From: Bispira polyomma
Taxonomy: Eukaryota
Reading direction: 5' to 3'
Length of the DNA stretch: 64,000 nucleotides
Assembly (NCBI GenBank): GCA_965649765.1
Contig: OZ287749.1
Coordinates: 24,180,001-24,244,000 of the forward strand
Part shown: positions 3,701-30,700 of the stretch, piece by piece
Layout of the letters: every line of letters starts with the position of its first letter
Numbering within the stretch: position 1 is the stretch's first letter
Made by a program: the position numbers and the translations under genes
The notes under the pieces: generated by a model
Told to the model about the DNA's origin: nothing
Databases searched by the model: none
What the model saw: the letters and a program-made list of their open reading frames with translations, nothing else

Positions 3701-6700
3701 CCAGTGATGTAAAAGCAGATAGTTACACATTGTAGGGATAGTAAGTGAGCGTTTCCATGCAGGCAACTTTCTGAGGCAATCAGGCGATGGCCGACGGCGA
3801 TTCTATCAGTTTCATTGATTTTAAACCAAGTGTTTCCATGTGAGCAACGCCAACAGGCGACAGGCAATGCCAGGCGATTTTTTCGCTACTAGGAACAGAA
3901 TAATGCTAGTTAAAAATCGCCTGGCATTGCCGTCGCCTTGTAAACATTGCCGATTTTTCTATAATTCTTACGACTTTGCAATTTCCATGGACTTAATGAT
4001 TGGACTAATGATTCTGCTGTTGCACTTTAGAAGATGCCTAGCATCAATAAAGCGCGTTAAAAATCTATAATAATAATAATAAATAATAATATAATAGCTC
4101 AAAAATTACTTAAGATATAAATTTCATGAAAATATGGTGAGGAAGCTTTTTTTATCGGGTATATTGTGCTTTTCGTTGCATCAAAATCAGGTTTAAATAC
4201 AGGTATCTATTTTCCCAAATAATTGTATAGAAACATACAAATTAAAAATTGCCTGTTATACGTCGGCTGGTCGCCTCAGAAAGTTGCCTGCATGGAAACG
4301 CTCACTAACTGTTGTTAATTCACCATATTAACATTATTAAATCCTTTGTTGATGATGGGTATCTGCTGGAAGTATAAACATCACATGTTATTCACAAAAT
4401 TTAATATGTATTTGCCAATATAGTTGATAACCCTACATTTCACCTGGGTACAGCACATTTGTGATAGAATGGTTTTTGCTGAATTGTGCAATTAAACATA
4501 CATTCATGCAGCTCCCTCAGTAGTGATAGACTTTGACATTCAAATTAGTGAACAAACATATTGACTATTATTATAGAATATTTTATATAGCGCCAAATTG
4601 ATATGTATCCTCTAAGGCTGCAGTGGTTGTCCAAATGGTTAGTCAGAGGACAGAAATGGGTCATGAGCAGAAGGGCATCCGAAAGGGAAGATTGGCTAAG
4701 GTGGGGGAAAAGCCAGTTCGAACAAATGTGTCTTAAAATGGCTCCTGAATTTATGAATATCTGTTTGGAATCTATTCTCACCTGGCAACTTATTGGTGGT
4801 AAAAAGCCCCACTTGACAAAGGTGTTATATAACTGGCTATTGCAAAAATGCTGCTGTAAATTTAAAACTACGAACACTTCAGGTGGATAACTAATGCACC
4901 CCTTAAAAAGGGCATGTTTGAGGTCTCTAAATTTGGATTTTTAACGTCCACTCTAGTACCTTTATTGGGACGGATAGTTGGAACGCTGGAGGAAACAGTG
5001 TATACAGTTGTTCAAGGTTCTGCACTGAAACCAGCGGCGTACAGTAAGGAACTACCACCTTTCCCACATAAGCATCAACGGGAGGTCAACCCACGCCAGT
5101 TGATCCCAGAGGTGAGAGTCCAGTGATTTTAAAGCTGACGCTTATAACCACTAGGCCACCACGGCCCCCCTGTTTGAGGTCTCTAAAACCCTTCTTTAAC
5201 TCCACCATAATGATTGCAATATCAGAAATTTCTATTCTATTGTGCTTCTGTTAAATCCCCCCAAATAACCTCTACCTGGTGTACTTGTCCATGGTGTCAC
5301 AAATGTACTGCAAACCTTCCTCGTTCATCTTTGATTTGGACATTTTTCTGAGTGATGGTAAGTCTACCAAGGACTCCTTGAAGACAGTGGCAGAAGTAGC
5401 CGATATCATCAGCTGTAATGTAAGAGTTGATGTATGTTGAATGTAACAAAATATGGTCCAAATTTCTGGTCTGAACATCATGTTTTTTCATTTAGCAGAT
5501 AGCCGACAACTGATAGGCAATGAATATTTCTTTCTGTATTTTCATACTGATGATGATTGCCAACAGCCAATATTTTATAAAATTTAATTTAAATTTTAAT
5601 TTAGTTTGGTTTTACACCACTTTCAACAGCTTATGTCATATCTACAAAGGCCAGATTTTTAATAGGGAATGGAACCAGTGCTGAAGCACTGTAAACCACT
5701 GACCTGCGGCAAGTACCAGACAAACTTTACCACAATGAAGAAATGAATGGGATTCGAACCCACATTAGTGAGAGACCATTATTACTGAGCGCTTCTAACC
5801 ACTAGGCCACTGCAGCCTTCCATTCTTTATGAAGGAAAGTATTTTATAATCACACACATGAATAGACCAGAATGTGATGTCAGTTATCTGCTGTAGTAGG
5901 CTATCAGTAGCCATGCATCTGTTACATGGAAGCATAGGCTTTAAGTGCATGAAAACTGAACATTATGGGAAATTTACAGAAAGTTTGGAGATGAGATGAA
6001 ATAGTTACCTGTGCTTTGGTGGCTTTGGTTAGGACATCAACTGTTGCAGAAAAGATTCTGTCCAGAAGGTACAAAACCTGTTTCCTTATAGCATCACTTT
6101 TGTAAGCCAGCATTGCCTGTACAGGTTGGAGGGAAAACATTTAAATGTATATAGATATCAACTTTAAGCTGCATTTTCTACCTGACTACCAGAGACACTT
6201 AACATTTTTTTATTATACGTTTACATATCATTCTACGCAGCCCCTGTAAGAACACCAATATATTTTTTTCATTTTTTAAGTAGTGAGCATCAGTTCATCT
6301 AGTAATCACCATTTAATACAATTATTTGATGATCATCAGATGATCTGGTGATCACCACTTATTAAGTGGTGATCACTTTTCACAATGTGTGCAGCCAATG
6401 CAAGGACACCAAGATATTTTTTTCATTTTTTAAGTAGTGAGCATCAGATCATCTAGTGATCACCATTTAATACCGTATTCGACGTAATTAGCGCACATGC
6501 TCTATTAACCGCACACCACCTCTTTCTGCCATTCAACACCACTGAATAAGTCACATGACTCTCCATAGCTTAGATCTCAATCACGTCTCCATATGGATTA
6601 GTCAGCAGTGAAAAAAAAAATAAATCCGAGATTTCCAAAAAAATGTGTTAAACTTACTGGATTATTTGTGCCTTGGTAACAACTGCTTCAGAATTTGTGT

Positions 6701-9700
6701 ATCCTTTTTGGTTCCAGTGAATGTATATTCTGCAGGTATTTCTAATCCAACACTGTTATTTTCTCTTTTACCGGTAACTGTAGCTGTAATTTGACCACCG
6801 CGTTTTATAAAGAAGTGGCAGACTTTAGATATTTCTTTGGGCAGGTGCCCAACAATACAATTGTTTTTTAAAACACTCACTGCATACTTGTCAAATTCAT
6901 TACTAGGTTCTTGTTCACATTCTAGTGTTTCACCAATAACTGGGGTCCAAATATCTGTATAAACATGAAAACCACGGACATTTGATGTATATTTAATAGT
7001 ACCGCTGTTCTCTACTGAAGCCATGCTGTCGATTGATCCACTTGACAGATTACAACGAAGAAGCAAGTGCTGAACTTCATAGTTTAGGGTTGATCATTTA
7101 TATTTCTCAGGGGGAGGGTTGTTGAAAATTAAATGAACATTCATACAGGATTTTTTTTTTTGTGTTTTGATGTTTCTTTTTTTCTTTAGCCCATATAGAT
7201 AAACCTAATTATAGCATTTAAAAAACACCTTTTCTACTTTACTAATTATTCACGTTCAGGGTAGTACAGATGATGTAACTTGTCATAGCCTGTTCATTTT
7301 ACACTAATAACTATAAGGTTGTAATAATATATTGTACTGAAAATTTTTTTTAACACCTCTTAGTAATTTTCATCATGGAATCAAGTAATCCATCACACAA
7401 AGGTGTCAAAATTAGTTCTTACACCGTAGCATTCAAGTTAAAGGTGGTGGAATATGCCAAATCTACAAACAATTCAAAGGCAGCAAAATTGTTTGGGGTG
7501 GACAGAAAGCGAGTTATTGAGTGGAGAAAATCTGAGAAATCTTTTCAGCAAATGGATAATAAAGGCAGCAGAAAGAGACAATCAGGTGCAGGGAGAAAAC
7601 TGGTCTATCCTGACATTGACGCTGAACTTCAGGGATTTATCACCAGAAGGAGGAAAGCAGGTGCAAGAATCACTGGAAAGCAGTTGTAAAGAGAATGTCT
7701 TAGACTACATAAGCTCAATGGAAACCAGTCATTTAAGGCTAGCTGTGGGTGGCTCAGGTCATTTATGAAAAGACACAATATTTCTTTTAGGAGGGCAACC
7801 CACATGGCTCAAAAGAGTGAAGAAGTGCTGGGTGAAAAAATGCACAACTTCCTGACTTATGTGACTAGAATGAGGAAAATCAGGAATTACAATCTGGCTG
7901 ATATTTGCAATATGGATGAGACCCCTATCTGGTTAGACATGCCTGGAAACTACACTCTCCAAGAATGTGGCAGTAAAACTGTGTCTATGCAGACAACTGG
8001 CCATGAGAAATCTCGAGTCACAGTTATGCTGGCTGCTTTAGCTGATGGAACTAAATTGCCACCAGTGGTCCTATTTAAGGGTGTTAGACCTCTCAAGGAT
8101 ACCCCAGGTGGTATTTTTATCAAAATGACTCCTCAAGCATGGGCAAATGAGGAAGTTATTAAAGAGTGGCTGTTTAGAGTGTGGAAAAGAAATAATGTAA
8201 CCAGAAGGCTTCTTGTGTGGGATTGCTTTTCAGGTCACATCACACCAGGAGTGAAGGAGGAAGTGAGGGTCAAGTACAACACCGATTTGGCCATCATTCC
8301 TCCAGGTTGCACTAGCAAACTTCAACCATGTGATGTGTCTTGGAACAGGCCATTCAAAGATGCCTTCAGAGACCTTTATGATGAATGGCTGGTTGATGGA
8401 CAAGTCGAATTGACAAAAAAAGGAAATCGAAAGCCAGTCAGTAAAATTACTCTGCTGGAATGGATCAAAACAGCCTGGGCCTCTGTTACCCCACAAATAA
8501 TTCAGAAGTCTTTCAAAAAAACTGGACTTAGTAACAGCATGGATGGAACAGAAGATCAAATGCTGTTCTGTGACAGTGAAGACGAAGATCCATTTGAAGG
8601 GTTTGATGAAAATGAGGTTCGAGAATCAACAACTTTTGCTGATGACCTCAGCAATACACCAAATGCCCTCATGCTAGACTCTAATGAATATAGTGAACCA
8701 GAAGAGGAGGAAATTGAGGAGAATTATGATGACCCAGGATCACCAGGCCATTAAAATATAAAGCAAACATTTGATTGATCTTGTAGCTTAAGTTTTAGTC
8801 TAAAATAATCCTACTTTGTTTAATTTATTTATATTGAGTGAAGTCGAGACCAAACAGAACTGTTTAAACTACAGTGTGATGTTTTTATATTTTGATTCAT
8901 TTGTATTAAAACTAAAGGGGATTTTTTTTTGATCTGAAGCATGTCATATGGAGCCAACACAAATTTCACATTTCCATCTAATAGAAAAAAAAATTAGTTC
9001 TCTTTACAATATACTATACTAAATTTGCCTTTTTGTGGTTTCACAAAATTAAAAAATATAGCAAGGATATTATTGGGGTTTTAGAAGTATGTATAGGTTA
9101 TATGTAATATTCACGTGGCATTATCACACATTAAAAAAAACAGTCTGTTATATTCAGAGAAAAAAATGCCAAAAGAAATATAAAAAATCATAAAATGTAT
9201 AGAGTAATAAAGTATATTCTAGTAGGAGCACATTTTTAAATGAATTTACCCCCAATGATCTACACATGCCTTGGTAAGACAGTGTTCTGGAACTTCTGCA
9301 TCTCCCCATCCAACACCCGCTGAGTTGATACAAAAGCTGAATGAGTACAACCGTAAATCGTGTAGTTATAATAAAACTGACTGAAAGCAAAGCAACCTTA
9401 CCACTATTTTTCAAGATCTTTATACAAATATTATGTTGTATTTATATCCTTAACTTTGCACAAAAGTTTACCTGTCATAGATTTCAGTTTAAGTTAGACT
9501 TAGTAAATTTTGCTTTTCAAACATATATGTGTGCTGAGCCACAGGTGGTAAATTACGTTTAGCATTCCCCCCTTTGGTAAACAAACATTGCGGTAAAAAA
9601 ATGAGGAGGATAAAGATTCTTATTTGTACTGTAGTTGTGGTGTAGAATTTGACACTTCTTTCCTGGGTAGGCTTGTTTTCTCAAATATTTATCTTTTACA

Positions 9701-12700
9701 ACAGATAATCATAGTGGAGAGAGATTCCAGGTGTTTTATGAAGGAAAACACACACCGGGATTTACCGCCAAGTTGGATATCGGAGTTGGAGGTGGACCAT
9801 TCACTTTTTATTGAGTGTGCGCTAATTAGAATGTGATGTTTCACTTAATTTGTTGAGTTAGAACAATTTTCGGAGGGCACTGTGCGCTAATTACGTCGAA
9901 TACGGTACAATTATTTGATGATCACCAGATCATCTGGTGATCACCACCTAATAAGTGGTGATCACCAGATGATCTCATGCTCACCACTTATTAAAATGAA
10001 AAAATATACATTGATGTCCTAATATGGCTCCGCATCATTCACATATTAAACAGAATAATGCTAGTTAATAATATATTTGTTGGGCTACTGTTACTAAACA
10101 ATGGTGTTGACAAAGGTTCTACTCATGTTTTGGCTGAAAAATCTGACAGTCGACGTAAATATGTAGTTCTGATAAGGCTTTGTGATCCTAATGGATGCCA
10201 TCTTGAATTTTAAAGAATGCTCAATGATTCCAGAGCAGCATCCCACAGATTCCGATTATATATACATCTTCCTTTATCAAATCAACTATAACTTGCATGG
10301 GGGTATTTTTGCAAGGTCAAGTAAAATCACATGCTGGCATCCGGATGATAAGTGTCAGTAACACTGTTACATTGTGAAAAAGAAACATTGTTATACATGT
10401 TAAACATAATTCTATGTGAACTGTTTTATCAAACAAATAAAAGAAAATTTTAAAGGAAAATGGCTTTGAGTACCACAGACATTTCTCCACATAAAGAGGG
10501 CATTTACAGGGTTATCCTTAAATGATCTGACTGTTTTAGAAATTATAATTAAAAATTATAATTGGAAATCATAATTAGAAAGAAATGTCAACTAGCTATT
10601 AAGTTACGAGTATATGGGTACACATGTATTTTCATCAGTTGTATAATATTAAGCATCCAAACTTGTTAAAGTGTTAACATTTTATAGCAGCCGCACTGAA
10701 TGAAAATTATTGGGTATTTTACTTACATATAAGGTGTCTATGATATCTTTCCCAAGGTAATCTGCCTTTTGCTTCATACCTTGCATTACTCTTCTAATTT
10801 CCGTTTGGAGTTTGGCATTTTTCCTGAAAACAACAGCCATAAAACTGAAACATCAGAAAGCCTTTTGCATTGTGGCACCTTGGTGGACATAGGTGTTTCA
10901 CTGAGTGCCCTTTTAGTTCAAACTTCATTTATCCCAGGAATCAGGTTTATGAAGTCAAACCTAAGAATTAGGACAATATAGAGCTTCTAAAGTTACTTCA
11001 AAGTACTATAGCTTGAACATAGGTATAGTTGGTCACAACGAATACTGTGATATACACAAAATAATACCATATCACATAATTACTGCTGCCAAGCAGATTA
11101 TGTTGTCACCTGTATATGTTGGTTTGTTTGTTTGGCAGGACTACACAAAATTATTGAGCTGAGGAAGGATGTGGCATGAAGACTGTATTTTCAAATTATT
11201 ATATGTCCATTTAATAATATAATGTAGGAGAACAATGGATGCCACAGATAGCAGAACATCATATGATAGCCTCAAAACTAGAAAAAATAATTTTGTCATT
11301 GTTCATATTATAACAGTCAAATTTAACAAAATACCCTAATAGACGGTCTTTATAATAGAAATAAAGTCTTCATGCTTGTACCTGGTTTTGTTGAATAATG
11401 GACTGCCTTCTGTGCTCATCTATTAGTCTAACAGAAGTGCAGTCCATTATTTCCCAAACAAAATAATATTATGCACATTTGGGGTGGTATTCACCATAAG
11501 GCTAAGCCATAACTTTGTCTTAGATCTATGGTACTATATTTTTGTGTGACTTAGCCCTTTTTTAAATACTGCCCTTGGACTTTAATTGCACAACAAACAC
11601 AACAGTATTCTGTATCAGTACGCACCATAACTTGACTTTTTTGTCATCTTTGAGGAGCAGCTGGACCAGAGGATGTTCACAGGCAAAGCAGGTGCTTGTT
11701 TTTCTCATTTGTAGCTCAACCTCTTTGTACGTGGCAATCAAATGCTGTAATAGACATTCGATTTAAAAGTATTCTGAGTTTACTGTCGCTTCCAACAACT
11801 GAATATTCACCCTTTTGTTACTGGGAGAAAACAACCGCTGGGAACTATAAAGGCTATTTTGGGCAATAGGTTACAGATAGCTAAAGTCACTAAAACACAC
11901 ACCACAATCTACTTCCGGCATAAGATATGGACCTCATGTACATTTTTTTAAAACAGGGGAGTCTGCTGTACTAACAATTTCCTACTACCAGGAATTGAAC
12001 AAAAATAAAATAATATTTTTAGGGTGTGGACTGTTTGCCAACAGACATCAGTGCTGGGAGTAACAATATACGTCCACTACTTGCTGACAATCCAGGGGTC
12101 AAAGGGGTACATTCTATATTGCAACAACAAGCAGTTTGCTGATGAAGGAAATTAAGACAGGGCCAGTCGGTCAAGATTTCTGAATTGCAAACCATCAGCT
12201 TTTAGCAAGTCTAAAACCAACTGTCTTAAATGCATGCTGTGGCCATGATTCAAACCCACAACTTCAGAGGTGGGAGGTGGGAGTGTTATCTGTACAACAC
12301 AAAGGCCTCAAAATGCAGTGATGATACAGGATTCGGGCAGTTAGCAGCAAAATACTGAACACACAAAAGCTAAGACAGTTAAACTTAGCACAGCATCTTC
12401 CTTTGCCTGCTATTAAAATCGTTACAAAACCTTTTCAGGATTACACGTACATTGTCAAGTAGATTCATCAATGTCACTAATGTTCTTTATGTTCCTTCTA
12501 CTGTCAAATTTTGGATTCTCATATAGATCGATGCACCTTATAATTCGCTTGCAAGAAGATTAGATACTGTAAACATTACTGAAATGATGATAGGACCTCT
12601 ACCTTCATTCGCTGATCCATTTGCTTCTCCAGAAGAACCTCCAAAAAGTCAATACACCTGCAAAGCACAAATTAAATAGACTCTGTATAAGTCAAATGTC

Positions 12701-15700: not shown

Positions 15701-18700
15701 TACATATAAATATTATACAGGACCTATTAAGTCTGAGGGAGGATGGAAATACTTTTTTAACCCATCAGGAAATAAATAAGATACTAGAGTTTTTTCTGTT
15801 TTGTTTGTTCCTATCATGTTTGAAAATTATAAAAAAAGTACTTTGAGTAGGAATAAACTATATATATAATAAAAAATAACAATCTATTAAATTGTACAGA
15901 TCAATGGAAAATAGATAGGCAAATGTTGTGTATTTGCCATAAAGAATATGTGGTACATTCAACATTCACGTATTAATATATCGAATTCATAAATTGATAT
16001 TTTCGAATTATGGCAAATATTCCCTATAAGACCAGCGCAGTGTCATGGCCAAAGTTCTTAAGATCAGAAATAGTTAAAATGAGACATTAAGAACAGCAGT
16101 ATTAATGTCAAAATATTTATTCCATGCATTCAATTCAAATGTGAGATCACATGGTACAATTAGGCTGTACCATCAAGCCCAACTGGCCTAAAGGGTGTAG
16201 TTATTCAAGATATAAATAAATAAAAAAAAGAATTAATACTCCCCCCCCCCCCCTCCCTCCCTTTTCCACATTAACACAATGCATAATAATAGACAATAAT
16301 TTAGCCTACGCTTCCTTTCAGCAGTCACAGATTTTTTAAAAATCTGAGCCGATCCAATGTCGGCCAATGTAGCGCTTCCTTTCATCAGATATGTAGTAAA
16401 TATTTTAATGCAAATTTTTTTTTTTCCTAATTTTTTGTTTCAAAATCGGACAGTTGTCCCAATTATTCCCCTCCCTGACAGATAAAAAATGTCGGCCTAA
16501 CAGAAGTCTGCTGACGTATGATCTGATTTGCTGCAAATATGATGAAAGGAAGCACTTGGTTATATTATATAGTGACCAATAAAATCAGCCAAGAAAAACA
16601 TGCTGAAAGGAAGCGTAGGCTTACAACATCCTATCTACCGAGTTGGTACCTAAAACACACTGTTAAGCTTTTCCACTTCTTTTAAAAGTTGTGCTGTCAC
16701 CATGCCTGACCTCTTACCATACTAAAACAATTTGCTACCTTTTTTTGGTTAATGTCGCATATAACATAGATATTTTAGAAAAAAAACCTATGCTTTCTTT
16801 CTTTTAAACCCACATGAAGGAACAAACACAACGATATGTTGAATATGTGGTACAGCCTTGGAAGGTATTTGTATGCAGGTCTAACTTCAGATATAAATTT
16901 TTTTATGTTGTGACAGAAATTAAAATCTACATTTTTTGACAAAATTCTTACATCTGTCAAATACTTACATCTGTCAATTTTTAATTTAGCTTTTAATTTT
17001 TGTAGCACAACATCAAAATATGTCATGCTACAAAAAAACCCAGCCAGCTACAAACTTACATCACTGGTCAGCAAGTTTCTCTCTGGCTGGGAGGATACCA
17101 GCTTTGGATTCTTGTGAAAGTAGGATTTGATCCATTTCTTTAGTTCTTGAAATCGGCTGGCACTTGTAATGGCTGACTGTAGAAACAACTAAGACATTTA
17201 AAACCTCCATTATCTAAACTGTATGGTGAAAGAGTTACATTTTGTTAGGATAATTGAAGCTTTCTAAGGTAGAGTATCCAATAAGTATATAACTACAGGG
17301 AAATGATAGTTAAAATGAATGAATGAGATTTTATATTTTAAAAGCGCCTTATTTCTTTACCTTTGAGGTCAACCAAGTCTCCCTCATCAGCAGACTATTG
17401 TTAAAGCTTTACCTGTAGTAAATTTCAGATCTGTAGTGACTTTTTAAAGTCTTTACTATAATTTGCATTACCTGCTCTTCATTGGAGTAACCCATCACAC
17501 TGTCACCAAGGCTGAACGCATAGTTGTTCGACATTTTACTGAAAAGTGACCCATTGTCAACTTCCAGAAATAGCACTATAGAAAGTAAATATCAAAAATA
17601 AGACATCAGCTGTTTCTTGCTAGAACAAGTTAATACGATAAAACTGAAGGCTAAATTCTAAAATTCACTGGACAGAGCATGACCATATTGAAAATAGTTT
17701 TCTCTAGAGTCTCCACTATGACAGTATTAGGGTTTAGTGTTATCCTTAGGGTTTATCGTTACGCATTCATAAGCCAGAACCAATATAGCCATGCCCTCTC
17801 GAGTGAATTATAGAATCGTTTCAAACTGAACACTAATTCTTTATTCAAGAAAATTCAAATATGTTGACTATTTTAAGAGATTTCCCACCAATGGGGATCA
17901 TTACATAAGTATATTTCCACAATTATATAGTCTTTTGTCCATACCTTGTCCAAAATTTTGTACAAGTTATTATTATTTATTATTATAGATTTTTAACGCG
18001 CTTTATTGATGCTAGGCATCTTCTAAAAGCACAACAGCAGAATCATTAGTCCAATCATTAAGTCCATGGAAATTGCAAAGTCGTAAGGAAGGAAGTGGGA
18101 GCGTGCACGAGGAAAGCTAAGGTGGGTAGGCAAGATTAAAAAGATAGGTTTTAAGCTTTTTCCTAAAACCGATAAGTGTGTCAACTGATCTGAGGTCAAC
18201 TGGGAGACTGTTCCATAACCGTGGAGCTGCAGTGGAGAACGCTCTTAAACCCGCCTTTCTGATTGGTCTGACCAAAGTGACAGAGAGTCTGTTGCCTCTC
18301 TTGCAGTTACTGAAGGAAAGAAGGGAGGCAAGGTAGGGTGGCTGTTGAGTGACTACAGCCTTAAAAGTGGTAACGTGAATCTTAAACAAAATTCGAGATT
18401 TAATGGGCAACCAGTGTAATTTTTTGAGGTAAGGAGTGACGTCTGTGCGACAACCCAGGCTAAAAATGACCCTACATAGGTAGTTTTGGATGGACTGGAG
18501 CTTTTTAATGTTTGACTTGTTTGCTTCGTACAAGAGAGAATTGCAGTAGTCGAGGCAGCTACTCACAAGGGCATTTGCCACAGTTATCGCTGTGTCCATG
18601 GACAAGTGGTTTCTGATTCTTTTGATGTCGCGTATGTGGTAATAGCAGGAGCGACAGATGTTGGCAACATGAGTATCGAACGAAAAAGCTGAATCAAAAG

Positions 18701-24700: not shown

Positions 24701-27700
24701 AAACTTAAGATATACTTGTTTGCCAAGGCTTTCCCTCCCTAGTTACATATTCATTCCGGCGTCTCCTGGAATATGACGACCTTCCGTAAAAAGGACTTTA
24801 CAGGACTTGAATATGAACATGTAATATGCGCCTTAGCATCCACTTTAATGGAGATTAAGCACTATAGAAGTTTGATTAGATTAGATTAGGTTTATTGATG
24901 TACAGTTTAAGCTAGACCGAGTTTTCTGTCCTTGGCAATGCTTTGATTTACTAATGTACGCATGACGAGAGACAGAGCTGTCTACTATAGCAAATCGTTG
25001 TAAATGTGTAACGGCACATATAACAGACAAACAGAATAATTTTCCCATGTAGTTTGTGGTTATATTGATTTATCTAATAGCCGCACACAATATTAGAACT
25101 TACAGCCAACCTAAAATACTTAATTAATTACATACAATTTTTTGAAAATATTGACGTACATTTCCCGTTCTATGGTATATAGTAAAATGCTGTGTCAGAT
25201 TTACAACAATTTGCTAAAGTAGACAACTCTGTCCCTCATAGTGCCATCTGTAAATCAAAGCATCAGCGAGGACAGGAAACTCTAAGTTTAAGCTAGAGTT
25301 AAAGCCTCACCTGTAGGAGGAGATGTGAAGGAGATTAAGCCTCACCTGTAGGAGGAGATCTGTAAGAGTTAAAGCCTCACCTGTAGGAGGAGATCTGTAA
25401 GAGTTAAAGCCTCACCTGTAGGAGGAGATGTGTAAGAGTTAAAGCCTCACCTGTAGGAGGAGATGTGTAAGAGTTAAAGCCTCACCTGTAGGAGGAGATG
25501 TGTAAGAGTTAAAGCCTCACCTGTAGGAGGAGATGTGTAAGAGTTAAAGCCTCACCTGTAGGAGGAGATCTGTAAGAGTTAAAGCCTCACCTGTAGGAGG
25601 AGATGTGTAAGAGTTAAAGCCTCACCTGTAGGAGGAGATCTGTAAGAGTTAAAGCCTCACCTGTAGGAGGAGATCTGTAAGAGTTAAAGCCTCACCTGTA
25701 GGAGGAGATGTGAAGGAGATTAAGCCTCACCTGTAGGAGGAGATCTGTAAGAGTTAAAGCCTCACCTGTAGGAGGAGATGTGTAAGAGTTAAAGCCTCAC
25801 CTGTAGGAGGAGATGTGTAAGAGTTAAAGCCTCACCTGTAGGAGGAGATGTGTAAGAGTTAAAGCCTCACCTGTAGGAGGAGATGTGTAAGAGTTAAAGC
25901 CTCACCTGTAGGAGGAGATGTGTAAGAGTTAAAGCCTCACCTGTAGGAGGAGATCTGTAAGAGTTAAAGCCTCACCTGTAGGAGGAGATGTGTAAGAGTT
26001 AAAGCCTCACCTGTAGGAGGAGATCTGTAAGAGTTAAAGCCTCACCTGTAGGAGGAGATCTGTAAGAGTTAAAGCCTCACCTGTAGGAGGAGATCTGTAA
26101 GAGTTAAAGCCTCACCTGTAGGAGGAGATGTGTAAGAGTTAAAGCCTCACCTGTAGGAGGAGATGTGTAAGAGTTAAAGCCTCACCTGTAGGAGGAGATC
26201 TGTAAGAGTTAAAGCCTCACCTGTAGGAGGAGATCTGTAAGAGTTAAAGCCTCACCTGTAGGAGGAGATCTGTAAGAGTTAAAGCCTCACCTGTAGGAGG
26301 AGATCTGTAAGAGTTAAAGCCTCACCTGTAGGAGGAGATGTGTAAGAGTTAAAGCCTCACCTGTAGGAGGAGATCTGTAAGAGTTAAAGCCTCACCTGTA
26401 GGAGGAGATCTGTAAGAGTTAAAGCCTCACCTGTAGGAGGAGATGTGTAAGAGTTAAAGCCTCACCTGTAGGAGGAGATGTGTAAGAGTTAAAGCCTCAC
26501 CTGTAGGAGGAGATGTGTAAGAGTTAAAGCCTCACCTGTAGGAGGAGATCTGTAAGAGTTAAAGCCTCACCTGTAGGAGGAGATGTGTAAGAGTTAAAGC
26601 CTCACCTGTAGGAGGAGATGTGTAAGAGTTAAAGCCTCACCTGTAGGAGGAGATCTGTAAGAGTTAAAGCCTCACCTGTAGGAGGAGATGTGTAAGAGTT
26701 AAAGCCTCACCTGTAGGAGGAGATGTGTAAGAGTTAAAGCCTCACCTGTAGGAGGAGATGTGTAAGAGTTAAAGCCTCACCTGTAGGAGGAGATGTGTAA
26801 GAGTTAAAGCCTCACCTGTAGGAGGAGATGTGTAAGAGTTAAAGCCTCACCTGTAGGAGGAGATGTGTAAGAGTTAAAGCCTCACCTGTAGGAGGAGATC
26901 TGTAAGAGTTAAAGCCTCACCTGTAGGAGGAGATGTGTAAGAGTTAAAGCCTCACCTGTAGGAGGAGATCTGTAAGAGTTAAAGCCTCACCTGTAGGAGG
27001 AGATCTGTAAGAGTTAAAGCCTCACCTGTAGGAGGAGATCTGTAAGAGTTAAAGCCTCACCTGTAGGAGGAGATGTGTAAGAGTTAAAGCCTCACCTGTA
27101 GGAGGAGATGTGTAAGAGTTAAAGCCTCACCTGTAGGAGGAGATGTGTAAGAGTTAAAGCCTCACCTGTAGGAGGAGATCTGTAAGAGTTAAAGCCTCAC
27201 CTGTAGGAGGAGATCTGTAAGAGTTAAAGCCTCACCTGTAGGAGGAGATCTGTAAGAGTTAAAGCCTCACCTGTAGGAGGAGATCTGTAAGAGTTAAAGC
27301 CTCACCTGTAGGAGGAGATCTGTAAGAGTTAAAGCCTCACCTGTAGGAGGAGATGTGTAAGAGTTAAAGCCTCACCTGTAGGAGGAGATCTGTAAGAGTT
27401 AAAGCCTCACCTGTAGGAGGAGATGTGTAAGAGTTAAAGCCTCACCTGTAGGAGGAGATGTGTAAGAGTTAAAGCCTCACCTGTAGGAGGAGATGTGTAA
27501 GAGTTAAAGCCTCACCTGTAGGAGGAGATGTGTAAGAGTTAAAGCCTCACCTGTAGGAGGAGATGTGTAAGAGTTAAAGCCTCACCTGTAGGAGGAGATC
27601 TGTAAGAGTTAAAGCCTCACCTGTAGGAGGAGATCTGTAAGAGTTAAAGCCTCACCTGTAGGAGGAGATCTGTAAGAGTGAAAGCCTCACCTGTAGGAGG

Positions 27701-30700
27701 AGATCTGTAAGAGTTAAAGCCTCACCTGTAGGAGGAGATCTGTAAGAGTTAAAGCCTCACCTGTAGGAGGAGATCTGTAAGAGTTAAAGCCTCACCTGTA
27801 GGAGGAGATCTGTAAGAGTTAAAGCCTCACCTGTAGGAGGAGATGTGTAAGAGTTAAAGCCTCACCTGTAGGAGGAGATCTGTAAGAGTTAAAGCCTCAC
27901 CTGTAGGAGGAGATGTGTAAGAGTTAAAGCCTCACCTGTAGGAGGAGATCTGTAAGAGTTAAAGCCTCACCTGTAGGAGGAGATCTGTAAGAGTTAAAGC
28001 CTCACCTGTAGGAGGAGATGTGAAGGAGTTTAAGTCTCACCTGTAGGAGGAGATGTGAAGGGGTTAAAGCCTCACCTGTAGGAGGAGATCTGTAAGAGTT
28101 AAAGCCTCACCTGTAGGAGGAGATGTGAAGGGGTTAAAGCCTCACCTGTAGGAGGAGATCTGTAAGAGTTAAAGCCTCACCTGTAGGAGGAGATCTGTAA
28201 GAGTGAAAGCCTCACCTGTAGGAGGAGATCTGTAAGAGTTAAAGCCTGACCTGTAGGAGGAGATCTGTAAGAGTTAAAGCCTCACCTGTAGGAGGAGATC
28301 TGTAAGAGTTAAAGCCTCACCTGTAGGAGGAGATCTGTAAGAGTTAAAGCCTCACCTGTAGGAGGAGATCTGTAAGAGTTAAAGCCTCACCTGTAGGAGG
28401 AGATGTGTAAGAGTTAAAGCCTCACCTGTAGGAGGAGATCTGTAAGAGTTAAAGCCTCACCTGTAGGAGGAGATGTGTAAGAGTTAAAGCCTCACCTGTA
28501 GGAGGAGATCTGTAAGAGTTAAAGCCTCACCTGTAGGAGGAGATCTGTAAGAGTTAAAGCCTCACCTGTAGGAGGAGATCTGTAAGAGTTAAAGCCTCAC
28601 CTGTAGGAGGAGATGTGAAGGAGTTTAAGTCTCACCTGTAGGAGGAGATGTGAAGGGGTTAAAGCCTCACCTGTAGGAGGAGATCTGTAAGAGTTAAAGC
28701 CTCACCTGTAGGAGGAGATGTGAAGGAGTTAAAGTCTCACCTTCAGGAGAAGATGTGAAGAGTTAAAGCCTCACCTGTAGGAGGAGATCTGTAAGAGTTA
28801 AAGCCTCACCTGTAGGAGGAGATCTGTAAGAGTTAAAGCCTCACCTTTAGGAGAAGATGTGAAGAAGTTAAAATGAGTTAAAGCCTCACCTGTAGGAGAA
28901 GACGTGAAGGAGTTAAAGCCTCACCTTTAGGAGGAGATGTGTAAGAGTTAAAGCCTCACCTGTAGGAGGAGATGTGTAAGAGTTACAGCCTCACCTGTAG
29001 GAGGAGATCTGTAAGCATTTAAAGCCTCACCTGTAGGAGGAGATGTGTAAGAGTTAAAGCCTCACCTGTTTTAGTATGAATCAGCTGTGTAAGAGTTAAA
29101 TCCTCACATGTAAAACTTGAGTCAGAGTTAAAACCTCACCTGTTGGGAGTAGATGTGTTTCACAATGAAACACCTGTGTAAGAGAGTTACAGCCTCACCT
29201 TTAGGAGGAGATGTGTCTCAAAGACGTTGAGGAACCTGCCATAGTAGAGGAGGCTGGAGTTACTCCTGGAGCTGGTCAGGACATAGATGATGTCATAGAT
29301 CTTACTGAACATCTGCAGCATTCTGGATCTGTCTGGGGTCTGGATGGGAACTCTAAGGATATCCACCATGAGGTCAGCCAACTGATGGCAGAAGAAAGAT
29401 ACTTCTTATTACAGTAGAAACTGTATTATCAGAATGTCTAATATTATCTAAATATTTGATCTTATGAACTCACATTCACTCACCCCAGAGTTGTGTTGTA
29501 GAAATAAAGTTTAAGGGCGAGTACTTTTTTGGCGAATAAAGGACTGACTTACAGCAGAATAATGGATGAGGGTCGGTAGGCTGACAACAGTATATTTTAA
29601 TATCTACTGACGGAACTATTTACACGTGATCTATTCTCCCAGATACAGTACGGTTACGAATTGCGCACTGACGGCTTTTGTATTCAATGCGCACTTCCGG
29701 TCTTTCTAATTTATACTAAAATGACTCTTTTATTTTACGAATCTTCTATTATCTGAACAAAATCGTGCTTTCCAAATGTGTTTGGTTAATAGAAGTTTTA
29801 CTGCAATTAACCATAGAATTTAGGTGTTATTTCTTACAGAAATCAGTGTAGTTAAAGTCATTGTTTTTTTTCATATTTTTTTTATTTTATTACAAAACTC
29901 ACATGCTTGTACACATGAGTCAATATGTGGAAAAGGAATATTGCATTTCTACCATATTCAAAGTACATTTTTACTCATAATCCATGAGTTAAAAGGCCGA
30001 AATTAAGAAATTGGCTACCAAAAATGATTTGCATATTTTTATAAATATATGTCTTTAGTTTATGGAAATGCATGGAAATGCATAATTGACTCACGGTGAA
30101 AAAAAGGATGTTCTGTCATGTCACTTGTCAGCTTTTTTAACGATTTTCATAAAATTTGAATTTTTAGTTCCAATTTTTGGTCTGGCTCATGGACTCTCAG
30201 TGTTTTAAATTAGGAGAAGAAAAAGTAAAGCATGCTGACCAATGGAAGCAGAGTAGTATACCAACATATTTCAGTCTAAATAAAGATTTTGAACATAGGT
30301 AGTATTTTTTTTGGACACACTTTGGTTAAATTTGGTGTACTACATATTCTCGGAGCCGGTTGCCATTACAGATGTGTATATCACTTAACTGGCCTTATGA
30401 CCTTACACAGTAAAAGGACATGAAAGAATACTCTCTTATGCCCCATTCACATATTGGTGGTATGGTAGGAAGTACCAGAAGGTACTAGAAGGTATTGTCT
30501 TTCGGCCTATTAAATCGGCTGTTTCATCTAATCTAATCTAGTCATACTTTTATAGCATCTAATCTTAGTACAACGAATTCTAAGGTACAAATTCGTTGTA
30601 GAAAGATTAAGCTCTATAAAAGTCATTCTGTTGTTTCTTACAGAAATCAGTGTAGTTAAAGTAATTTTTTTTCTTATTTTTTATATTTTTATTACAAAAT

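Follow-up and report, generated by a model that had tools for sequence, protein, structure and literature searches.

The window analysed here is a stretch of 64,000 nucleotides from Bispira polyomma (assembly GCA_965649765.1, contig OZ287749.1, positions 24,180,001 to 24,244,000 of the forward strand); all coordinates are window positions, position 1 being its first letter. At 6473–9905 lies a Passer-type pogo transposon in which perfect 25-bp TIRs, flanked by a TA duplication, enclose a transposase gene and a divergent open reading frame (ORF) for a HIRAN domain. Its features are as follows.

6471..6472: left TA target-site duplication (arm comparison and sister copies)
6473..6497, + strand: left TIR, 25 bp, starting with the Passer end motif CCGTA (arm comparison; PMC9976928, Table S1)
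6662..7024, - strand: stand-alone HIRAN-domain ORF, 120 aa, intact (ORF, Pfam, PDB, fold, alignment)
7025..7374: spacer of 350 bp that separates the two divergently oriented start codons, presumably a bidirectional promoter (sequence)
7375..8754, + strand: Passer-type pogo transposase, 459 codons (Pfam, alignment)
about 7417-7548, + strand: BrkDBD of the transposase (Pfam)
7687..7689, + strand: premature TAA, codon 105 of the transposase (in-frame stop)
about 8008-8514, + strand: DDE_1 of the transposase (Pfam)
8755..9880: AT-rich 3′ region in which no ORF is conserved and related elements show no similarity
9881..9905, - strand: right TIR, 25 bp (arm comparison)
9906..9907: right TA target-site duplication (arm comparison)

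The two arms, 6471–6497 and 9881–9907, are 100% complementary across 27 nt, corresponding to the TA plus the 25-bp TIR. TA flanks both ends in nearly all sister copies, and a paralogous host-repeat unit (6303–6340) shows the empty site, with a single TA. The perfect TIRs and TA duplication claimed in an earlier note on this DNA are thereby borne out, and the HIRAN ORF is, as that note described it, head-to-head with the transposase and uninterrupted from an ATG at 7024 to a stop at 6662 on the minus strand. The DDE_1 transposase that it placed at 7375–8754 is likewise present, but an in-frame TAA interrupts codon 105 in this copy, which is therefore non-autonomous. A polypyrimidine-AG stretch in the spacer (~7150–7189) resembles a splice acceptor and may belong to the transposase 5′ UTR.

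The transposase has the Pfam domains BrkDBD, HTH_Tnp_Tc5, and DDE_1 and an acidic tail, and its catalytic residues D181, D283, and D320 (at 7915, 8221, and 8332) form a DD36D triad. The DDE_1 domain with a DDxD triad, HTH_Tnp_Tc5, the TIRs, and the TA duplication are features of the pogo superfamily. Those of Passer (PS) are the BrkDBD and HTH_Tnp_Tc5 pair, a double DNA-binding motif that marks the family (PMC7386202), and a TIR shorter than 30 bp with CCGTA/CCGTA ends (PMC9976928, Table S1). Passer has been described as a single-ORF, DD35D family (PMC7386202, PMC9976928), whereas the window element has an extra divergent HIRAN gene, conserved under selection, and falls within a large subclade with DD36D spacing, which 53 relatives share. 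Most of the other elements that bear HIRAN have DD35D. Because it is DD36D, the window element appears from its sequence to be part of a Passer-like DD36D sub-lineage and not a textbook Passer member. In a tree built without Tigger, pogoR, Fot, Lemi, and Mover references, its transposase clusters with DD35D proteins from fish and turtle, one of which is named POGK-like.

HIRAN is carried by about 60 copies genome-wide, and one TIR pair encloses both genes in about 45 copies. The copies occupy many TA sites on large contigs, with nothing apparent at the insertion flanks except TA in AT-rich DNA, and lie about 0.6–1.5% from the consensus. The 459-aa transposase frame is fully open in 14 of the 47 copies examined, and the TAA at 7687–7689 is common to only L003, L004, L007, and L012 besides the window copy; twelve further loci of the same genome, including three old diverged HIRAN copies, were left out of the copy comparison. 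Private mutations give an omega of 1.1–1.6, a dN/dS near 1, and the changes common to several copies comprise five synonymous and five nonsynonymous in HIRAN and six and twelve in the transposase, the latter counts being inflated by a misaligned copy (L043). Within-genome dN/dS is uninformative, as too little time has passed since the copies arose for selection to show. The window element is thus one of a young, multicopy set of Passer-type pogo transposons whose second gene is a stand-alone HIRAN.

The HIRAN ORF matches Pfam PF08797 with E 1.8e-8 (34.5 bits against a cut-off of 24.7), and its top PDB match by sequence is the HIRAN domain of HLTF (E 9e-5). HLTF HIRAN is also the top fold match of the predicted model (pLDDT 90; Foldseek probability 1.0, TM 0.74), in which a six-stranded barrel and two helices are predicted, as expected for HIRAN; the ORF thus both scores and folds as the domain that the earlier note had named. 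We scored pocket conservation over about 154 homologues, with positions mapped via alignment to HLTF HIRAN. D45 and N42 (HLTF D94 and N91) are each conserved in 98%, H60 (H110) in 95%, and Y22 (Y73) in 93%, and the position of K63 (K113) is Arg or Lys in 84%; H110, K113, R71, and Y73 of HLTF are positions that we take to be functional. In HLTF, D94 is the 3′-OH reader (PMC5773155), the N90A-N91A substitution disables the domain (PMC11237066), and the pocket fits one single-stranded dinucleotide (PMC4666394). The two-tyrosine clamp of HLTF, Y72/Y93, is not kept, as the Y72 position is Val or Ile and the Y93 position is His, Tyr, or Phe in only about 61% (Phe in the window copy), so the ligand may differ from that of HLTF.

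Compared with HLTF/Rad5 HIRAN (PDB 4XZF, 4S0N, 5BNH), the transposon HIRAN shares the fold and the five conserved pocket equivalents but is about 24% identical, stands alone without a SWI/SNF motor or RING, has His in place of R71, and carries features specific to its family, namely R17, W26, and the motif G(L/M)E(I/V)P. Bacterial and phage stand-alone HIRAN proteins (such as lp_0118, PDB 3K2Y; PHROG families) are also single domains on mobile DNA and provide the next-best Atlas clusters and weak PHROG matches, but they are distant (TM 0.59), whereas the window-type HIRAN sits in eukaryotic cut-and-paste elements. A tblastn search of HIRAN against 50,697 phage records gave no match, and no HIRAN relatives were found in viral contigs.

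Dozens of related elements in other samples, probably marine animals, carry a conserved HIRAN gene. Related loci fall into 37 HIRAN families at a 75% identity cut; a DDE_1 pogo transposase adjoins HIRAN in 23 of the 37, and in 15 of the 18 whose flanks reach 2 kb or more on each side. Common TA-CCG TIRs surround both genes in L031, L035, L038, the L076 group, L096, L122, L140, and L143, and the flanks outside the TIRs hold only one transposase match in 161 kb. The pairs occur in four gene orientations, the HIRAN stop lying 10–14 bp upstream of the transposase ATG in the same-strand pairs L031 and L143, and no HIRAN-transposase fusion was seen in any locus read. Also common are short TIR elements with HIRAN as their only gene, in an open frame (L039, L062, L075, L115, L119, L135); they may be young deletion products. 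HIRAN homologues number 1337 clusters at E<1e-10 and 5721 at E<1e-3, genomic context having been checked for the nearest only. Of four close transposase relatives, two have no HIRAN, namely L141 and L142, and the TIR of L142 is almost identical. Fish Passer, for which a single ORF has been described, shows high activity in human cells; HIRAN is therefore dispensable.

Between families, HIRAN dN/dS is 0.11, 0.11, and 0.16 for three family pairs, like that of the transposase for the same pairs (0.06–0.17), and the ML omega in one group is 0.145 (2dL 149 versus omega=1). The neutral drift and one-off capture that the earlier note had named as grounds for rejecting its proposal are thus contradicted: other copies keep HIRAN, and unrelated families in other samples do so under purifying selection, in TIRs that also enclose the transposase. 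In many Passer-like lineages, HIRAN is an accessory of old standing, under selection but optional. A comparison of the two gene trees, which the note had suggested, gave partial agreement (Mantel rho 0.26), but the transposase topology is rejected for HIRAN (AU p 0.0065). The two-gene lineage proposed in the note stands, but is broader than claimed, in that it includes HIRAN-Ulp1 fusions and HIRAN is optional.

These fusions join HIRAN to an Ulp1/SENP-like protease and form one clade, monophyletic in both the HIRAN and transposase trees; the protease triad is intact, and the His-Asp-Gln-Cys residues are invariant in 11–12 of the 12 fusions. The window element and most families have HIRAN alone. 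Ulp1 domains are found repeatedly in Ginger1 and Mutator elements, and the Ulp1/OTU proteases of Ginger1, Mutator, and Helitron are similarly transposon-borne, with a proposed repair or SUMO role (PMC2836005), but the Ulp1 of Ginger1 is joined to the transposase, whereas in the fusion clade a pogo element carries it joined to HIRAN, in a gene separate from the transposase. The TBE/Tec elements of ciliates also hold a separate accessory gene within their TIRs, but with other proteins and in other superfamilies. The same is true of the PIF/Harbinger Myb protein and Tn7 TnsE. We know of no multi-gene DNA transposon with a HIRAN accessory, and a literature search for HIRAN-bearing pogo elements, with Repbase and Dfam outside its scope, found no paper, in agreement with the note's impression that the architecture was undescribed.

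Excision of Tc1/mariner/pogo elements leaves the donor flanks with short single-stranded 3′-OH overhangs, and primer-like 3′-OH ends are present at the gaps that adjoin a new insertion. We propose, with a probability of about 45%, that HIRAN caps the 3′-OH overhangs at excision breaks and acts as a decoy against host HLTF. The small protein would bind the two-nucleotide 3′ ends left by transposition and, lacking a motor, would serve as cap and decoy, keeping host HLTF/Rad5-type 3′-end readers from loading or from stripping the post-cleavage transposase complex. It may instead prevent them from committing the break to quick repair, and either more transpositions would be completed or host damage signalling would be reduced; in the fused clade, the end-binding module would bring a SUMO/ubiquitin-like protease to the break. 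The proposal is supported by the HIRAN domain and fold, the conservation of D45, N42, H60, K63, and Y22, the linkage to a transposase, and purifying selection. It draws further on the dinucleotide pocket of HLTF, the 0–4 bp footprints of Passer (PMC9976928), the Ulp1-like fusion, and the precedent of isolated HLTF HIRAN, which is dominant-negative and blocks HLTF removal of Cas9 on cleaved DNA as well as resection (PMC11237066). It is weakened by the altered aromatic clamp and by the dispensability of HIRAN (L141, L142, fish Passer), and blocked resection could reduce homologous repair at the donor site, costing the element copies. Tentatively, we regard these elements as a two-gene class of Passer-like pogo transposons, widespread and so far undescribed, in which a host-type DNA-end reader, alone or with a SUMO protease, has been domesticated as a decoy or adaptor at the element's own excision breaks.

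Pogo and Tc1/mariner are textbook one-gene transposons. A selected second gene resembling a 3′-end reader suggests that these elements manage the host response to their own breaks, and with a 120-aa protein and naturally intact copies at hand, one can test directly how transposons stop host repair from aborting or undoing jumps. The very many HIRAN-only and HIRAN-Ulp1 ORFs that had lacked an explanation (the 5721 clusters, the nearest checked for context) also gain a home. Passer is under development as a gene-delivery vector (PMC9976928, PMC11840574). If HIRAN does act as a decoy or adaptor at excision breaks, it would represent a protein with which eukaryotic transposons specifically steer the repair of breaks by the host, and a large orphan HIRAN family in invertebrates would stem from it. 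It might also find use as a helper protein for transposon vectors or as a small HLTF antagonist.

It seems unlikely that HIRAN instead selects targets, binding nascent 3′-OH ends at forks or repair gaps and drawing the transpososome into replicating DNA, comparably to the steering of insertion by Tn7 TnsE. HLTF HIRAN does read nascent-strand 3′ ends at forks (PMC5773155, PMC11237066), and the 10–14 bp spacing in L031 and L143 suggests coupled expression; however, no locus read has a HIRAN-transposase fusion, the partial agreement of the trees is unexpected for a tight binding pair, and nothing but TA in AT-rich DNA is seen around the insertions.

The monophyletic HIRAN-Ulp1 clade with its intact triad, and the recurrence of Ulp1 domains in Ginger1 and Mutator (PMC2836005), would fit a protein that guards the element against silencing by the host or against loss of its transposase through SUMO-directed removal, with the fusion as the ancestral or more complete form and HIRAN binding to DNA or RNA 3′ ends merely localising the activity. 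Such a role is distinctly improbable, as most families, including that of the window element, keep HIRAN alone under purifying selection, without the protease. We find it similarly doubtful that HIRAN promotes repair, by holding donor 3′ ends for sister-chromatid templated gap repair or by aiding gap filling at new insertions. Pocket conservation and selection would suit this role as they do the cap and decoy, sister-templated repair restores the element and so benefits copy number directly, and open-frame HIRAN-only elements are common. These may, however, be mere deletion products, and in the only experimental precedent a motor-less HIRAN inhibited break processing (PMC11237066).

That HIRAN hitch-hikes without function, as a neutral or host-derived passenger that stems from a gene fragment captured once, is very improbable: the near-neutral private mutations in this genome and the absence of HIRAN from close relatives would allow it, but any transposon gene should decay neutrally once inserted, and the transposase does so equally. 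The reading is largely refuted by transposase linkage across families and between-family dN/dS of 0.11–0.16, and the 1337 clusters at E<1e-10, the four orientations, and the near-invariant pocket residues also speak against it.

Three further origins were considered and rejected. A viral or phage source, or contamination, is at odds with the absence of relatives in viral contigs or phage records and with copies at many TA sites; an exon of a host HLTF gene is at odds with a complete ORF that has its own start and stop, is about 24% identical to HLTF, and moves with the element; and a chance neighbour or nested insertion is at odds with one TIR pair around both genes in about 45 copies and many families and a single transposase match in the 161 kb outside the TIRs.

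The HIRAN-bearing pogo element is real and conserved, and it is apparently undescribed. The copy in the window is 3433 bp long and is organized as follows.

6473 to 9905: whole element
Both element ends: perfect terminal inverted repeats (TIRs) of 25 bp, starting CCGTA, with a TA adjoining each
7024 to 6662, minus strand: HIRAN ORF, 120 aa
7375 to 8754, plus strand: transposase frame, 459 codons

The perfect TIRs and TA duplication reported in the earlier note were found as stated, and the TA is a true duplication, since a paralogous host-repeat unit 154 bp upstream presents the identical site with a single TA. The coordinates of the uninterrupted HIRAN ORF and the head-to-head transposase, with 350 bp between start codons, likewise agree; an in-frame TAA at 7687–7689 disrupts the transposase in this copy. 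The host repeat into which the element has inserted (6237–6472 and 9906–10008) is short, palindromic, and GATCACC-rich, and looks like another non-autonomous element.

The HIRAN-like assignment, made originally by reading the sequence, is borne out by both profile and fold. The small ORF matches Pfam HIRAN with E 1.8e-8 (34.5 bits against a cut-off of 24.7), all of its top PDB sequence matches are HLTF HIRAN, and its AlphaFold2 model (pLDDT 90) superposes on HLTF HIRAN with a TM of 0.74, compared with 0.59 for a stand-alone Lactobacillus protein. The transposase contains the Pfam domains BrkDBD, HTH_Tnp_Tc5, and DDE_1, which is the Passer arrangement (PMC7386202), and the CCGTA ends and TA duplications are also those of the Passer table. 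Passer is defined as DD35D, however, whereas the triad D181/D283/D320, common to 53 relatives, is DD36D; the element is therefore classed as Passer-like, within a DD36D sub-lineage.

The Bispira polyomma genome contains at least 37 full-length copies that are 97–100% identical, and HIRAN is encoded at about 60 places. Among 47 aligned copies, which diverge from the consensus by about 0.6–1.5%, the HIRAN frame is open in 37 and the transposase fully open in 14. Nearly all copies are bracketed by TA and occupy unrelated sites, and in public DNA contigs the element reaches about 40-fold the depth of its flanks, contig depth being a rough guide only. This burst is too young for selection to be visible within the genome. 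TA plus the element TIR occurs 1154 times genome-wide (≤1 mismatch), against the roughly 60 HIRAN-bearing copies, and most of the matches listed lack a partner TIR 3.4 kb away; many short derivatives thus share the element end, and the genome probably holds about a thousand short non-autonomous relatives. Four copies on contig C7 (L003, L004, L007, and L012) have identical flanks, reflecting segmental duplication. Like the window copy, they have the stop at codon 105, which makes it appear that a dead copy was mobilized in trans. In another subfamily (L023–L028 and L030) the transposase frame is 1381 nt, one base over the others, yet it has spread to many sites. The same genome also has old and degraded HIRAN copies that belong to other families (46–70% identity), at G000:C1:63123331, C7:46001923, and C4:82316137.

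The pairing of HIRAN with a transposase is old and widespread, as befits the transposon lineage, rather than one-off capture, that the earlier note had envisaged. The three word-index homologues (66, 49, and 54% identical) all adjoin a pogo transposase gene. HMMER returned 5721 clusters at E<1e-3, 1337 of them at E<1e-10. Eukaryotic members dominate the nearest Atlas cluster, with Porifera the most frequent phylum. Drawn from the query's nearest relatives among the 5721 clusters, 80 loci from metagenomes and several from assemblies were grouped into 37 families at 75% identity. A DDE_1 transposase lies within 3.5 kb of HIRAN in 23 families, and a transposase or TA-CCG TIR pair in 26; where each flank is ≥2 kb, the fractions are 15/18 and 16/18. 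Distances are mostly <1 kb, and 161 kb of flank outside TIRs yielded one transposase match. Shared TIRs enclose both genes in L031 (HIRAN then transposase on the same strand), L035 and L038 (tail to tail), L140 (head to head), and L143 (tandem); they are also present in L086, L096, L122, and the L076 group. For L120/L128, where the adjoining transposase is DD32D, a search for a shared TIR found none. Only 10–14 bp separate the HIRAN stop from the transposase ATG in L031 (5360–5371) and L143 (3986–4001), a same-strand spacing that suggests a bicistronic or re-initiating transcript. TIR elements of 0.6–1.1 kb with HIRAN alone are common.

Four transposases picked by similarity and contig span alone provided the reverse test. 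HIRAN lies inside the TIRs of two (L140 and L143) and was not found within the L141 or L142 elements, the TIR of L142 being almost identical to that of the window element. HIRAN is thus an optional accessory, consistent with the high activity in human cells of fish Passer, described as single-ORF.

HLTF reads the 3′-OH through D94 and pinches the final two bases between Y72 and Y93 (PMC5773155); its cavity accommodates one single-stranded dinucleotide (PMC4666394), and N90A-N91A disables HIRAN (PMC11237066). By PDB sequence alignment, the element has D45 for D94 and N42 for N91 (each 98% conserved among homologues), H60 for H110 (95%), Y22 for Y73 (93%), and K63 for K113 (R/K in 84%). The clamp differs from that of HLTF: V/I occupies the Y72 position, and about 61% of homologues have H/Y/F at the Y93 position. 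Aromatic or basic residues close by, F19 (Y/H/F 97%), W26 (96%), R17 (93%), and H20 (95%), are conserved, and our guess is that they could stand in for the clamp. The element HIRAN likely binds 3′-OH.

Excision of the Tc1/mariner type leaves 2–3 nt 3′-OH overhangs at the donor site, and the new insertion site has short gaps with 3′-OH ends. Passer footprints of 0–4 bp (PMC9976928) fit such overhangs. After loading via HIRAN onto a freed 3′ end, HLTF removes Cas9 from cleaved DNA, and the isolated domain blocks this removal as a dominant negative (PMC11237066). By analogy, once the transposase exposes DNA ends at the break, the motor-less HIRAN would cap them and keep HLTF-type processing away until the jump is completed, a reading to which we assign a probability of about 0.45 and which is readily testable. 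Binding of HIRAN to the element's own break ends, the step common to decoy and repair-helper models, is on balance probable. Targeting of insertion to forks by HIRAN is unlikely, and promotion of donor-site gap repair, which shares the end-binding step, slightly more so, as is counter-defence via SUMO or silencing pathways.

In homologues of 290–350 aa, HIRAN is followed by an Ulp1/Peptidase_C48-like domain whose profile matches SENP1, SENP2, and Ulp1 in the PDB, with the active-site His, Asp, Gln, and Cys invariant in 11–12 of 12 fusion proteins. Within CCGTA TIRs, the fusion genes (dN/dS 0.13–0.18) and a DD35D transposase are arranged tail to tail; the fusions were found in L038, the L076 group, L096, and L122, in DD35D pogo elements with first motif D-Q. 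Ulp1 domains are known from Ginger1 and Mutator elements (PMC2836005), whereas here the domain is in pogo and joined to HIRAN; neither Ulp1 in pogo nor a HIRAN fusion was found in the literature searched, and these genes deserve separate study.

That HIRAN is a neutral passenger is highly improbable, as the dN/dS check proposed earlier indicates that it is not drifting neutrally between families: values are 0.11 (L086/L109), 0.11 (L085/L096), and 0.16 (L076/L122), and those of the paired transposases 0.06–0.17. A codon model gives omega 0.145 for the L086 group (2dL 149 versus omega=1) and 2dL of 64 and 427 for two further groups. The gene trees, compared without a root, agree in part. Transposases with HIRAN are scattered through several deep DD35D and DD36D clades; shallow nodes are concordant (window/P0001, L086/L084, L085/L096, and the fusion clade), with a Mantel rho of 0.26 (p 0.026, n 16), but an AU test on HIRAN rejects the topology of the transposase (p 0.0065), deep-branch support being weak. 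Together with the occurrence of four gene orientations, this partial agreement suggests long residence of HIRAN in the elements with rearrangement, loss, and some exchange.

Both Passer papers describe one gene, given in the pogo survey as one or two transposase ORFs; HIRAN as a word occurs nowhere in the Passer paper, its supplements, or the pogo phylogeny paper. As the earlier note had supposed, no HIRAN-bearing transposon was found in the literature searched, Repbase, Dfam, and subscription journals lying outside that search, and it is rather unlikely that a database already holds a note on one. Elsewhere in the window, a 35-bp satellite with strong GC skew occupies 25295–29069 (107.6 copies, 96% matches), and a 162-aa ORF at 18117–18605 on the minus strand resembles, by eye, the C-terminal part of a LINE reverse transcriptase.
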